A DNA stretch of 64,000 nt from Adineta vaga. Taxonomy: Eukaryota; Animalia; Rotifera. The first letter of the stretch is position 1, and each line of letters begins with the position of its first letter. Of the stretch, positions 15,277-37,596 are shown one piece after another. The position numbers and the translations under genes were made by a program. The stretch covers positions 7,316,001-7,380,000 of the forward strand of contig CP075493.1 in assembly GCA_021613535.1 (NCBI GenBank), written 5' to 3'. Under the pieces are notes generated by a model. That model did not search any database and was not told the origin of the DNA. It worked only from the letters and a program-made list of their open reading frames with translations.

Positions 15277-16879
15277 TTAACCAAATATATCAAGACCACC
15301 CATATCTTCATCATCTGATTCTGGTTCAGCTGGTTTTGCTGCGGGTGCAGCAGCAGCTGGCTTACCACTTGCAGCAGGTGCACTGGTTGGTGCTGCGGCA
15401 GCAGCAAATTTCGATGGATCTTTCAAGTATTCTTTCAACTAAAATACACAAAAGAAAACAGTTGAGTTCTATTGCAAACAGAAGAATTCTTAGTAATAGT
15501 AAACATAAAAATGGATTTCAGAACGCTGTTGGATATGGTTATTTGTTCATCAGTTGCTTTAATCAGTAGCAGAACTGGATAACAAGATTCATCATATGTC
15601 CATTTCTTCTCTAGAGAAAAAATTTCGTTCTTTTACTTACAGTTTTAGCTTGTTCAAACTCAACATCAGAGTTAGCGGCCAATCCAAGTAGACGTTTGAA
15701 TCCACCAAGAATGAGATGTGGTGCTGATGCTTGATTTGGATAATTAATACCAAGTGAAAAAGCAGCTAAACGTTGAACACCTTGAGAGAATTTGGCACGT
15801 AAATCAGCTGGTTTAATATCAAGAATTGTTGGTTCGAAACAAGATCCCGAATCATAAACTAATCAAAGAAAAACAATACAAGGATACATATAATAGAAAA
15901 ATCATTGTGTTCTACCTTGACGAATAATTAAACCATAACTAAATGGTGAAATATTCAACATATTAAGTAATGTTGCTTCACTTGGACCAACTTTCTCACC
16001 AATTTTAATTAAATGAACATCATTCTAGAAAAATCAAAGTAATTTAATTTGAATTTATATACTTGTATATACCTACGTACAATGATTTCAATAGTACCAC
16101 GTGTGATTTTAGTTGGAATTTGAAGTGCTTGAAAAAAACTGGTTTTTTCTGGACCTAAATTTGTTACTTGTGCCGGAATAGTGACATCAACAGGTGCAAT
16201 AGCACCAGCACGAGCTGGAGCAGCGACCTAAATAGAATTCTCTATGAATAAATATCAATTGAATTCAACATTCTCAAACCTTATTTTCCAAAATTTTATC
16301 GCGAATTGTACTTAAATCTTCTTTGGTAAAAACAAAGCCAATATTTTCATAGACATGTGGTAGTAATTTTTCTAAATTGCTATTTTTTGATGTTTGTCCA
16401 CGAATAGTTTTACGCATCATTGTATTTTTTCCCATCAAAATAACTAAATAAATTCATATTTAGCATTATTTCAACTATCTAACGAACAACATGAACACAT
16501 ACCAGCATGACCACGAAGAGATACACGAATTTTTTGCATTTGACGAGAACCAACATTATCAGCACCGACAATAAACACTTTCGGATATTCATCCAAATAT
16601 TGCTAGAAGAATATAAAATTTTACCTTAGTATAGATTATTTCGTTTGTCCTCTCGTATATATCCTTTAATAACTATATAGTTTTGAAATAATTGCTCTCA
16701 GAAGATATTATTCTCAGTGTTTCCGAAGAAACTCAAAATTGCAGAACACAGTATAAATTTGATAATCATCAACGAGCAATTACTGATAAGTTCGGTTTTT
16801 TAATACATCGAAAAATTATCTATACCGTTAAACGCATTGTATATTTGGCTTTCCATGTTGAACGATCTTCTTTCACCAT
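15277..16879 (-). CDS. RPLP0: 60S acidic ribosomal protein P0 (uL10)
   Basis: Exon 1 [18 protein letters not shown] (16879-16826), then [57 protein letters not shown]. Ala-rich hinge; ends [14 protein letters not shown]. Missed by the ORF track because the exons are short. Confidence 0.97.
15509..15605 (-). ncRNA. Intronic box C/D snoRNA, SNORD38/snR61-like, with a second guide
   Basis: Lies in the last, unusually long RPLP0 intron. Terminal stem AAATGGA/TCCATTT, C box ATGATGA, guide CCAGTTCTGCTA + D' CTGA, C' CTGATGA, guide CCATATCCAACAGCGTT + D CTGA. The D' guide is complementary to conserved 28S AGCAGAACUGG. Confidence 0.88.
16689..16782 (-). ncRNA. Intronic box C/D snoRNA, SNORD96-like (5.8S Gm75 guide)
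   Basis: Lies in RPLP0 intron 1. Perfect 9-bp terminal stem TAATTGCTC/GAGCAATTA, C box TTGATGA, guide TGTGTTCTGCAATT + D' TTGA, internal GTTTC-TTCG-GAAAC hairpin, D box CTGA. The guide is complementary to 5.8S AAUUGCAG(A/G)ACACA. Confidence 0.82.
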
Positions 16880-33674: not shown

Positions 33675-36600
33675 TCATAATTTCTTTTTCATGTCTGCGA
33701 GGTTTTTTCTATACATTCGAAGATCAGGATGTCCTGAAGGCAATGATTGTTGTGCAATTTGTACAGCACGCTCATAAAATGAACCGGCTTTTGAATAGTT
33801 CTTCATGTCTTCATACACCACACCGATGTTGTTGCAAGATGCAGCCAAATCAGGATGATTTGGTGGTAGTGAGTTTTGTCGAATTGCAAGGGCTTTTTCG
33901 TGAAATGAAAGTGCTTTTGTATAGTTAACCATGTTGTAATGCACCAGAGCAATGTTGTTGTAAGATGCAGCCAAACTCGGATGATTTGGAGGAAGTGATT
34001 GTTGATCAATTGCAAGAGATTTCTCATAATATGAAAGTGCTTTTGAATAGTCACCCTTGTTGTCATACACCAAACCGATATTGTTGAAAGATGAAGCCAA
34101 ATCAGGATGATTTGGAAGAAGTGATTGTTGTCGAATTGCAAGGGCTTTTTCATGAGATGAAAGTGCTTTTGAATAGTCACCCATTTCGTCATACATCAAA
34201 CCGATATTGTTGTAAGATAAAGCCAAATCAGGATGATTTGGAAGAAGTGATTGTTGTCGAATTGCAAGGGCTTTCTCATGAGATGAAAGTGCTCTTGGAT
34301 AGTCACCCATCTTGGAATACACCAAACCAATGTTGTTGTAAGATGAAGCCAAATCCGGATGATTTGGAGAAAGTGTTTGTTGTTTGATTGCAAGAGCTTT
34401 TTCTTGAGATGAAAGTGCTTTTGGATAGTCACCCATGCTGGAATACACTGCACCGATGTTGTTGTAAGATGCAGCCAAATCAGGATCTTTAGGAGAAAGA
34501 ATTTTTTCCTCGATGGCAAGTGTTTTTTCATAGAATCTAACTGCCTCTTCATATTCTCCTCGATTGTATTTGATGGAACCAAGTTGACTATAAATTGGTG
34601 CCTTTTCACTCTCCTTCGTTGTTTGATCAAGCAGCATTTCATAAATCTCTTCAGCCTTCTCATTTTGACCCAATTTCTTTAGCACTAAACCCAATCTGTA
34701 CCATCCTCTCGAGTCTGGAAAACTCTCTTCTCGTATGCGCTCAGTTAGTGCATGTAGTTCCTTGTCATTATCACTGGTCAATGTCAAACTAACTTCGAAG
34801 AGTTTGTTATTTCCATCCATTTGTTTGAAATTCTGAGTTCGAAACACGCTGTGCATTGAAAATAGCACTTCATCTTCATCCTCAATGGCACTATGATCAC
34901 GAATTGATGCAAATGATGTTGTTGATTGTTTTGGATCAATTTTTATTACAAACAAAATTGCCACCAAATCTGGATTACTTAGATTTTCTTTTGCAAACCT
35001 GAGTGAAACATTTTTCTCCTTGCTAGTGGATAAGAAATTGTTAAAGGACATGAGTCCACCTTTAGTTTTCTTTAATTGTTCGAAATCTGCGATGGATACG
35101 CCTTGTCCACGATAAACTGTGAAAATTTTATCCATGTGTTGTTCTTCATGCACGGATTTGATGTGTCGATGTAGATCGTTGATAAAGAAGCCCATCCGTG
35201 TCATGATGTCACCATCCATCGTTCTGATTCCACGATTGAGCATGCGATAAAAGAAGCATTCATAGGTGTACCACCAGATAGGTTTTTCCTGATGATATTT
35301 GCGTTCCAATAGTTTCACTTTCTCTAATTCTTCGTCGTTATCGATGAAAAGTTCACGACAGTAATGAACGTAATCCTGAATATGTGCATCGTCGAATTCG
35401 ATGGTCAATAAGATCTCCTTGAGGATCTGGGTGTACATGAAAGAAGGATCTAATTGATCCAACTTTTTGTCAGATGCCACGAAACTGATGGAAGCGGCAT
35501 TTTGTTCACATTGTGCTACAGGGTATAGCAAAATTATAGACCCCTCATACACATGCATACGAAAATCGTTATTTTATTTCAGCAATAAGAGATGGCGGTC
35601 AACCAATGGCATAGGAGTGCGTGGGTACACATGTACTATCTACCAATCTAACATCGTATTTCCGTTCGCTGATAGTGGAAGAAAAAAATACAAATCAGTG
35701 AAAACTTGCTGTACCATAATTATAGGCCCCCTATACGAAAAATACATTTCTCGATTTTCTAGAGTTGATCATCAGGCGATTTCTGAAAATTTGTTCGATA
35801 ACAAATAACGTTCTATCTATTTCTCTCACTTTGAGATATGGTTGGTCAAAGTTATGGCGCAGATTCTCGTTATTATGAGTTTTACTGGTGGCTTATAACT
35901 AACTACGTGATCTTGATCAGAATATCATTTTTTCGTAATTTTGATTTGTTCAGAACTAGTCCGATAGATGTGTTTACTCTAGATAGCATCGCCCTGATTG
36001 AAACTATGTTGATTAAAGATCAATTTGATAGAGTTTGAGAAGATAGCTATCGTGGTACCCCATAGCTATGTAGACTGTTCCTTAAAAAGTCGCAGAATTT
36101 CATGACTAGTTGAACCGATGACTCCAGTCTAATGGTATAGTTAGAGAGAGCATATCAAGTTGTACAAGAATATCAACAAATATAATACAGGAAAGCAGTC
36201 CTCAGAATAAAGATTGATGACGTCGAAGATTAACTAGTTTCACCCGATATATGCATATGGAGGCAACAGAAAATTTGTTTATATAATTTTGATACACTGA
36301 TTCCGGCGGACTCTATACACTTTTTCAGACACCTCTTTGATTATGAATCTCAGTAAAGTAGGAAAAATCCAGTTTCCTTCTTCATGAGTTACTATAACAC
36401 AATCAGACGACAGTAGTTAATTTTGCATAAGTTTAGTAATTAGCCAATCTTCGACGTCATCAATCTTTATTCTGAGGACTGCTTTCCTGTATTATATTTG
36501 TTGATATTCTTGTACAACTTGATACGCTCTCTCTAACTATACCATTAGATTGAATTGGTTGCTTCAACTAGTCATAAAATTCTGCGACTTTCTAACGAAC

Positions 36601-37596
36601 AGTCCACATAAAAGAGTAGTACCAAGGTGACTATCTTCTTAAACTCTACTAAGTTGCTCTTAGATCAACATAATTTGAATTAGGGCAATGCTATCTCGCG
36701 TAATTATGTCTATCAGACTAGTTTTGTGTAGATATAAATTACGAAAAAAGTGTCTCCTGCCCAAGATCACGTAGTTAGTTATAAGACACCAGTAAAACTC
36801 ATAATAACGAGAATCTGCGCCATAACTTTGACCAACCATACCTCAAAGTGAGAGAAATAGATAGAATGTTACTTGTATCATAGGAAAATGTCAGAAATTA
36901 ACAGTTGGTCAACTCCAGAAAATCGAGAAATGTATTTTTCGTATAGGGGGCCTATAATTATGGTACAGCAAGTTTTCACTGATTTGTATTTTTTTCTTCC
37001 ACTATCAGCGAACGGAAATAGGATGTTAGATTGGTAGATAGTACATGTGTACCCACGCATTCCTATACCATTGTTTGGTCACCATCTTTTACTGCTGAAA
37101 TAAAATAACGATTTTCGTATTCATGTATATGGGGGGTCTATAATTTTGCTATACCCTGTACTGCTTGTTTGAGAGCTTCACAGATAGGTTTGATCTCTGT
37201 AAAGACTCCCTTAATCTTCGGCCATTCTTTCGCCCATTCTTCATGTCGTTGTTTGTTGCCACAAAAGATGAAAATGGAATCCACTTGAGACAAATCATGT
37301 ACCCGAGGTACAGTATGCTGTCCAAGTGAACCTGAAATAATCATGCACGCCTTACGACCTTTGATGGTTTCAATAAACTGGATGCACTGATCGCCATTGG
37401 TGTAAGTGTTTAAATCAATGACAGCACGTCGAAGTTGTATCATAGTATTTTGACAATCTTCATTGTTCTTGTCGATACTGCCATCCAACCATATAAGAAG
37501 AACACTTTGGATCTTCTGAATATCAAGACAACGACGTCCACGTGTGTCTCTTGAAGTTCCAGTTGTTTTTTCAGTTGTTGCGGTGTTGCTTGCCAT
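33675..37596 (-). CDS. ADP-ribosyltransferase (R-S-E clade) + TPR protein, interrupted by a DNA transposon
   Basis: The N-part (ORF 37138..37596; LLIWLD...IISGSLG...IFIFC) and C-part (ORF 33675..35558) join in frame as ...KQAV|AQCEQN... (759 aa) when the insertion and one TA are removed. ART motifs VYRGQ, FLSTS, EDEVLF; 8 TPRs; otherwise intronless. Confidence 0.9.
33720..34475 (-). repeat. Six tandem 126-bp (42-aa) TPR coding repeats
   Basis: Unit A.SYNNIG.VY..MGDY.KALS.HEKALAI.QQSL.PNHPDL, repeated with high nucleotide identity. Confidence 0.95.
35519..37158. mobile_element. Non-autonomous foldback/MITE-like DNA transposon with Tc1/mariner-type ends
   Basis: TA|CAGGGTATAGCAAAATTATAGACCCC ... 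GGGGTCTATAATTTTGCTATACCCTG|TA. Inverted arms at 35519-36231 and 36446-37158 (713 bp each) around a 214-bp spacer. TA duplication at 35517-35518 and 37159-37160. No transposase ORF. Confidence 0.95.

Follow-up and report, generated by a model that had tools for sequence, protein, structure and literature searches.

A foldback DNA transposon of 1,640 bp was identified inside a protein-coding gene in a 64,000-nucleotide (nt) stretch of chromosome 1 of the rotifer Adineta vaga (contig CP075493.1, positions 7,316,001 to 7,380,000; called the window here, with coordinates counted from its first letter). It interrupts the only coding exon of one ART-TPR paralog, between the N-terminal and ADP-ribosyltransferase (ART) domains. 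It is probably a young element, freshly inserted, so that the locus would represent an insertional allele and not an established intron, and the family to which it belongs is probably not an introner family; should the message be rescued, the better-precedented route would be one of the SOS-splicing type. An initial annotation of this DNA had proposed that the transposon splices itself out of the transcript in frame and makes a new intron wherever it lands at TAG. The features are listed below in the order of the gene, which lies on the minus strand; a slash marks a junction and aa stands for amino acids.

37159–37596, minus strand: upstream coding piece of the ART-TPR gene, 146 aa, ending EALKQAV; N-terminal domain, no Pfam match
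37159–37160: TA target-site duplication, gene-upstream copy
35519–37158: non-autonomous foldback DNA transposon, 1,640 nt, ends CAGGGTATAGCAAAATTATAGACC...CCCTG
36438–37158: terminal inverted arm, the 5′ arm on the gene strand (repeat finder, predicted fold)
37153–37154, minus strand: hypothetical GT donor in the terminal repeat (agg/GTATAG), predicted to pair with 35523–35524
37138–37140, minus strand: premature stop codon (TAG), reached after six codons of the element (QGIAKL-stop) if the element is kept in the message
36240–36437: central loop between the arms, 198 nt (repeat finder)
35519–36239: terminal inverted arm, the 3′ arm on the gene strand (repeat finder; 645 of the 723 arm nt paired in the predicted fold)
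35556–35558, minus strand: ATG within the terminal repeat, in frame with the downstream piece (627-aa open reading frame)
35517–35518: TA target-site duplication, gene-downstream copy
35516–35517, minus strand: hypothetical AG acceptor, formed by the A of the duplicated TA and the host G, after TTTTGCTATACCCTGT
33675–35516, minus strand: downstream coding piece, 613 aa plus stop; ART domain PF01129 (aa 81–240), then TPR repeats

The boundaries of the element are sharply defined. A repeat finder returned one inverted pair, 35517–36239 and 36438–37160, whose arms of 723 nt are 88% complementary and separated by 198 nt, a match far above chance expectation. Without the shared TA the element spans 35519–37158 (1,640 nt), and with a TA on both sides the insertion comes to 1,642 nt; the repeat arms make up 88% of the element. 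On the gene strand the sequence across the element reads AAA CAA GCA GTA / CAGGGTATAGCAAAATTATAG ... CTATAATTTTGCTATACCCTG / TA GCA CAA TGT. The proposed splice junctions on the same strand are GCA GTA CAG G/GTATAG at the 5′ side (G at 37154, T at 37153) and TTTTGCTATACCCTGTAG/CA CAA TGT at the 3′ side (A at 35517, G at 35516). Both the re-read sequence and the repeat finder agree with the arms and junctions of the initial annotation, the arm length being 723 nt here and 713 nt there. A repeat search found no direct repeats inside the 1,640 nt, and the sole open reading frame of the element (113 aa) gave no match in a Pfam search, so that no coding capacity was found. The TA duplication, the CAGGG...CCCTG ends and the 723-nt arms fit the Tc1/mariner superfamily, an assignment made on structural grounds.

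The exactness of the insertion is revealed by its paralogs. The assembly totals 100.8 Mb, with six contigs and a GC content of about 30%, and dozens of ART-TPR paralogs are present in it at 70–89% nucleotide identity (84–89% in searches with each flank). The empty site was found in all 18 paralogous loci that were fetched, with the flanks contiguous, CAAGCAG CA GCACAATG, and no gap. The annotated paralog protein P0157 is also continuous across the site (EALKQAAARCEQNA; KQAAARCEQ), and the two pieces of the window gene abut along P0157 with no gap. From the uninterrupted paralogs and the gap-free protein alignment it follows that the site read GCA GTA GCA (Ala-Val-Ala) before the insertion, and that the gain is 1,640 nt plus the duplicated TA. 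At the DNA level the element breaks the frame of the gene, and a stop follows six codons into it.

A word search with the downstream exon, whole or restricted to its non-repetitive ART region, matched no A. vaga protein for the window locus and returned only the paralog I4U23_026119; this absence is uninformative, because the masking of repeats before annotation (PMC8494291) may explain it. Although the genome holds dozens of ART-TPR paralogs, I4U23_026119 is the one annotated A. vaga protein of the family in the protein collection, which suggests that the family is largely absent from public annotation, possibly through prior repeat masking.

Whole-genome searches gave about ten elements and, with the 24-nt terminus, 18 termini, on five chromosomes (C1 to C6 designate chromosomes below), and a TA duplication flanks all copies with intact ends. 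Their identities to the window copy are 99.3% (C3:5111149–5112788), then 94, 84, 83, 81, 80 and about 70%. The 99.3% copy, referred to here as the sister copy, differs at 11 of the 1,640 sites, and its own arms are about 88% identical, as in the window copy. The equal arm identity of both young copies indicates that the divergence between arms is older than the last jumps and is a feature of the family, not a clock. The intact open reading frames flanking the window element were considered as a sign of selection and rejected: sister copies differ at 0.7% of sites, which leaves too little time for decay since the insertion, and open frames on either side are therefore uninformative on selection. 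A recent jump into the ART-TPR exon would have created a fresh insertional allele.

Coding exons are split by only the two youngest copies. The older ones (70–94% identity) have no long open frame abutting them and none lies in a recognisable coding exon; nearby open reading frames that match Pfam families, one from a Kelch gene and one from a TPR gene, are 300–380 nt off and do not run across a junction. These older copies are located mostly toward the chromosome ends, and the canonical transposable elements of A. vaga are known for a subtelomeric bias and a low overall content (PMC8494291). Their position outside exons and near chromosome ends fits a history in which insertions in genes were purged, and not one in which they were kept as introns. 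The claim that the family makes introns at each TAG landing is not supported by its distribution: many copies serving as introns of unrelated genes were not found, and among about ten copies only two, the youngest, are in genes. Enrichment of TA/G targets was not significant, since the outward-facing bases at the 16 scorable flanks were G in 5, C in 4, T in 5 and A in 2, with a rough binomial chance of about 0.08 for at least five G if G makes up 15% of bases.

The sister copy splits a coding exon of an S-adenosylmethionine-dependent carboxyl methyltransferase gene (PF03492; C3:5111005–5113720), between LIQLGVEHL and DISNSSSPLIIADFGSSHG, where rotifer homologs read GIDHLDIS with no gap. It has the same orientation to its gene as the window copy, and a G follows the sense-strand 3′ TA. 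The gene model at this locus in AV20, a haploid A. vaga assembly (PMC8494291), is I4U23_012252, which is 100% identical to the locus and has 285 aa, compared with 343–350 aa in the homologs. It starts at an internal methionine 25 residues downstream of the element and is without the 66 N-terminal residues of the homologs, including the ADFGSSHG motif. The AV20 annotation drew on mapped RNA-seq, a de novo transcriptome and PASA in funannotate, after repeat masking (PMC8494291); as masking could hide an intron, the model is weak evidence against one.

The splice arithmetic of the initial annotation was confirmed. The proposed intron, 37154 to 35516, takes 1,639 nt of the 1,642-nt insertion, its GT lying five bases inside the element and its AG being formed by the A of the duplicated TA and the host G. 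Its removal leaves the original frame plus one glutamine, a net gain of 3 nt (CAG); with 37161 as the donor, 1,646 nt would be lost and the frame would shift. The +CAG rule is general, for it holds for any insertion whose 3′ TA precedes a G, whatever the codon phase; the element and its duplication thus supply on paper a frame-keeping GT...AG both in the window and at the sister locus, where the same hypothetical splice would yield HL-Q-DIS. The junction after exact removal would read GCAGTACAG/GCACAATG in the window and CATTTACAG/GACATATC at the sister locus. In metagenome contigs, neither the empty-or-plus-3 junction pattern nor the 26-nt element terminus had any match (0 in both cases). Look-ups of proteins and contigs likewise turned up no spliced product. 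Within about 100 nt of the element ends there are seven GT and three AG, or 21 pairs, and the whole gene stays open in three of them, so that chance could account for an in-frame pair, which is weak evidence for an introner. Exact GT-AG removal with one added glutamine is, on paper, one of several possible outcomes.

The transcript of the element is predicted to form an extreme hairpin. The predicted pre-mRNA fold reaches −1088 kcal/mol, and 645 of the 723 arm positions pair with the opposite arm. In this fold the donor GT pairs with 35523–24, and the acceptor is found in the same perfect 27-bp terminal duplex, at the foot of the hairpin of about 645 bp. The arms had been suggested to base-pair and bring the two splice sites together; the pairing is indeed predicted, but it would bury both sites in the perfect duplex, which weighs against splicing.

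A spliceosome-independent way of removing hairpin-forming transposons from messages is already known in animals, and it had been left out of the mechanism first proposed for this locus (PMC12779559). Zhao et al. (Nature 2025) showed that exonic copies of Tc1, Tc3 and Tc4 are excised from C. elegans mRNAs, and hsMar2 from mRNAs of human cells, with an efficiency of up to >99% (PMC12779559). In this process, SOS splicing, the RNA is cut at multiple positions within or close to the terminal repeats, seldom GU-AG, and small indels remain; pairing between the inverted repeats is both required and sufficient to set it off. It resists a spliceosome inhibitor and requires AKAP17A, CAAP1 and the ligase RTCB (PMC12779559). 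If the ART-TPR message is repaired, the better-precedented route would be one in which the paired terminal repeats are recognised, excision is imprecise and independent of the spliceosome, and RTCB ligates the ends.

That such a repair actually takes place at this locus is a tentative proposal, somewhat less likely than not. AKAP17A would recognise the paired 723-nt repeats, the RNA would be cut near the repeat ends, and RTCB, recruited via CAAP1, would rejoin it, giving mixed junctions, some of them in frame, and a partly buffered gene. The element has this trigger, inverted terminal repeats that pair within an exon, to an extreme degree, as judged from the predicted fold and from the exon position given by open reading frames and paralogs, and the known substrates include Tc1/mariner-type and long-repeat elements, among them Tc3 and Tc4 of C. 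elegans and, in human cells, hsMar2 (PMC12779559). The three host factors also appear to be encoded in A. vaga, with family matches above the curated Pfam cut-offs. The RNA-binding domain of AKAP17A (PF25015) matches with 55 and 49 bits at C6:10895197–10895865, CAAP1 (PF15335) with 43.9 bits at C2:12546504, and RtcB (PF01139) with up to 295 bits at three loci, C3:9037602–9038699, C3:8931334–8933015 and C6:2403646–2404638. However, SOS splicing is unreported in rotifers or any spiralian, the duplex of 720 bp may instead be edited or enter RNA silencing, and the AV20 model of the sister gene is without an excision product, though imprecise isoforms may give no model. If the message is rescued at all, an SOS-type excision would still be better precedented than exact spliceosomal removal. 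Regarding the RtcB loci, two of the three are broken up when all six frames are viewed, suggesting that they contain introns, and the third lies in a single stop-free frame of 511 aa that may represent a second RtcB of different origin.

Removal of 37154 to 35516 by the spliceosome, with a full-length protein carrying one extra glutamine and the family acting as a nascent introner at TA/G, appears unlikely. The exact and general arithmetic speaks for it, as do the sister methyltransferase copy in the same TA/G context and the apparent use of the GTATAG donor at intron 1 of RPLP0, a gene elsewhere in the window; introners are documented, moreover, that bring a single splice site of their own and draw the second from the duplication, as are introners that insert a few codons in frame (PMC9860276). 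Against this, the AV20 model at the sister locus has no such intron, both proposed sites fall in the 27-bp perfect duplex, the family has only about ten copies with no older one in an exon, and three of the 21 nearby GT/AG pairs are in frame regardless. GTATAG is also a poor fit to the usual donor consensus, GTRAGT, with which it agrees only at positions +1 to +3. Two AATAAA motifs are present on the gene strand inside the element, at 36471 and 35578, which further disfavors an introner. The 1,639-nt length stands against a species median of about 55–58 nt, the intron lengths of A. vaga being taken from PMC5916493, in which most introns have 30–100 nt and the mean is 108 nt. The initial idea of an in-frame self-splicing transposon therefore keeps its anatomy, its arithmetic and the general +CAG rule, but not the inference of an introner, against which several results stand.

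A related reading, an introner at birth in an asexual animal, is very unlikely. The repeat would supply the GT and a pyrimidine tract, the TA and host G would supply the acceptor, and insertions at TA/G would be spliced exactly (+CAG) and tolerated in exons. This would explain why both young copies are exonic and in a TA/G context and, if true, it would be the first introner in the rotifer literature searched.

Several observations nevertheless weigh against a simple insertional allele whose best-precedented rescue is of the SOS type. Both of the youngest copies (2 of 2) are exonic with TA/G on the sense strand, which is what the survivorship of splice-competent insertions predicts; by a rough estimate, post hoc and with n = 2, the joint chance is about 1%. 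These two young exonic copies in a splice-competent context are the strongest point for the initial idea. Exons account for about 40% of the A. vaga assembly (PMC5916493), and a diploid asexual can retain a knock-out in the heterozygous state if the gene is not essential. A pyrimidine-rich run precedes the TAG at the 3′ end of the element, and the 5′ site is transcribed about 900 nt ahead of its pairing partner, so that U1 could bind before the hairpin forms. GTATAG, in addition, appears functional as a donor at RPLP0 intron 1: its use there, noted in the initial annotation, appears correct by eye and is consistent with the conserved N-terminus of RPLP0. The intron, which we take from a comparison by eye with human RPLP0 to cover about 221 nt (16604–16825, minus strand), has the donor ACG/GTATAG at 16825 and the acceptor ttcttctag/CA. 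Finally, homologs of AKAP17A, CAAP1 and RTCB are necessary, not sufficient, for SOS splicing in rotifers. RPLP0 intron 1 is itself somewhat atypical, as its length exceeds the typical 30–100 nt of the species and its donor is unusual.

Expression of the downstream ART-TPR part alone, lacking the N-terminal domain, either from the ATG at 35558, driven by a promoter within the element, or through trans-splicing of a spliced leader to the new TAG/CA acceptor, is highly improbable: this ATG is in frame with the downstream open reading frame (33675–35558, 627 aa), as the initial annotation stated, and opens a frame with the entire ART domain and the TPRs, but the first AUG after the acceptor (CAATGTGA) is out of frame and meets an immediate stop, and the N-terminal domain is retained in all paralogs examined.

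Among known systems, the closest to the fresh insertion described here are the Tc1, Tc3 and Tc4 insertions of C. elegans, which, like the window element, are cut-and-paste transposons with pairing repeats that lie in a coding exon and bring in premature stops, and for which excision near the repeat ends can restore the frame. Tc4, likewise a foldback element, measures about 1.6 kb and has repeats of about 770 bp, dimensions similar to those found here (1,640 bp, arms of 723 nt). SOS junctions are heterogeneous and rarely GU-AG, whereas in the window element one particular GU-AG pair would give a clean gain of 3 nt. The host phylum also differs, and rotifers are not mentioned in the SOS paper (PMC12779559).

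Introners (PMC9860276, PMC12130899) share with the window element the non-autonomous nature, the terminal repeats, the target duplication and the arrangement in which one splice site lies in the element and the other comes from the duplication and the host. An introner of Aureococcus adds 12 in-frame nt (PMC9860276), and the window element would add 3 nt. Introner families, however, consist of many copies proven to be introns in many genes, whereas the family described here has about ten copies, two of them in genes and both very young. The main text of neither PMC9860276 nor PMC12130899 mentions rotifers. The non-autonomous miniature inverted-repeat transposable elements (MITEs) and foldback elements of the Tc1/mariner group have in common with it the TA duplication, CAGGG-type termini, the absence of coding capacity and a low copy number, but its repeats, at 88% of the length, are much longer than in typical MITEs. 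MITE-derived introns are reported by the thousands in Fritillaria borealis, mostly with AG-AC or AG-AT borders and with transcript support (Henriet et al. 2019, as cited in PMC11282704). They resemble the proposal for the window in that a transposon within a gene is removed at or near its ends, whereas the window case is a single GT-AG proposal from sequence. In another species of the genus, a 940-bp intron of the A. steineri desaturase gene has been called “introner-like” from general intron features only (PMC10597677).

The event itself, a young DNA-transposon insertion in one member of a very large gene family, is ordinary. Two near-identical copies with strong hairpins, placed in two unrelated single-exon coding regions, nevertheless constitute natural reporters in a species with public RNA-seq. 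Reads across both junctions would tell which of three outcomes applies in a third animal phylum, among them spliceosomal removal, which would be the birth of an intron, and the absence of any rescue. Predominance of the exact GT-AG product at the two loci would represent a rare observed case of a transposon-made intron in an animal.

An autonomous partner of the family was looked for at 12 DDE_3 loci, none of which (0 of 12) has similar ends, and no transposase lies near the solo termini at C1:16199177, C1:16597619 and C3:9805313. A DDE_3 match beside the old copy on C5 was considered as a partner and rejected, as it belongs to a separate Mos1-like mariner nested in that copy, the ends of which (TACATAGGGTGATCCAAAAGTT) are only loosely like those of the foldback element. 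This mariner (C5:1324034–1325339), inserted in a foldback copy of about 78% identity, has perfect terminal repeats of 31 nt and an uninterrupted 412-aa frame with HTH_48 and DDE matches, and from its sequence it looks potentially active.

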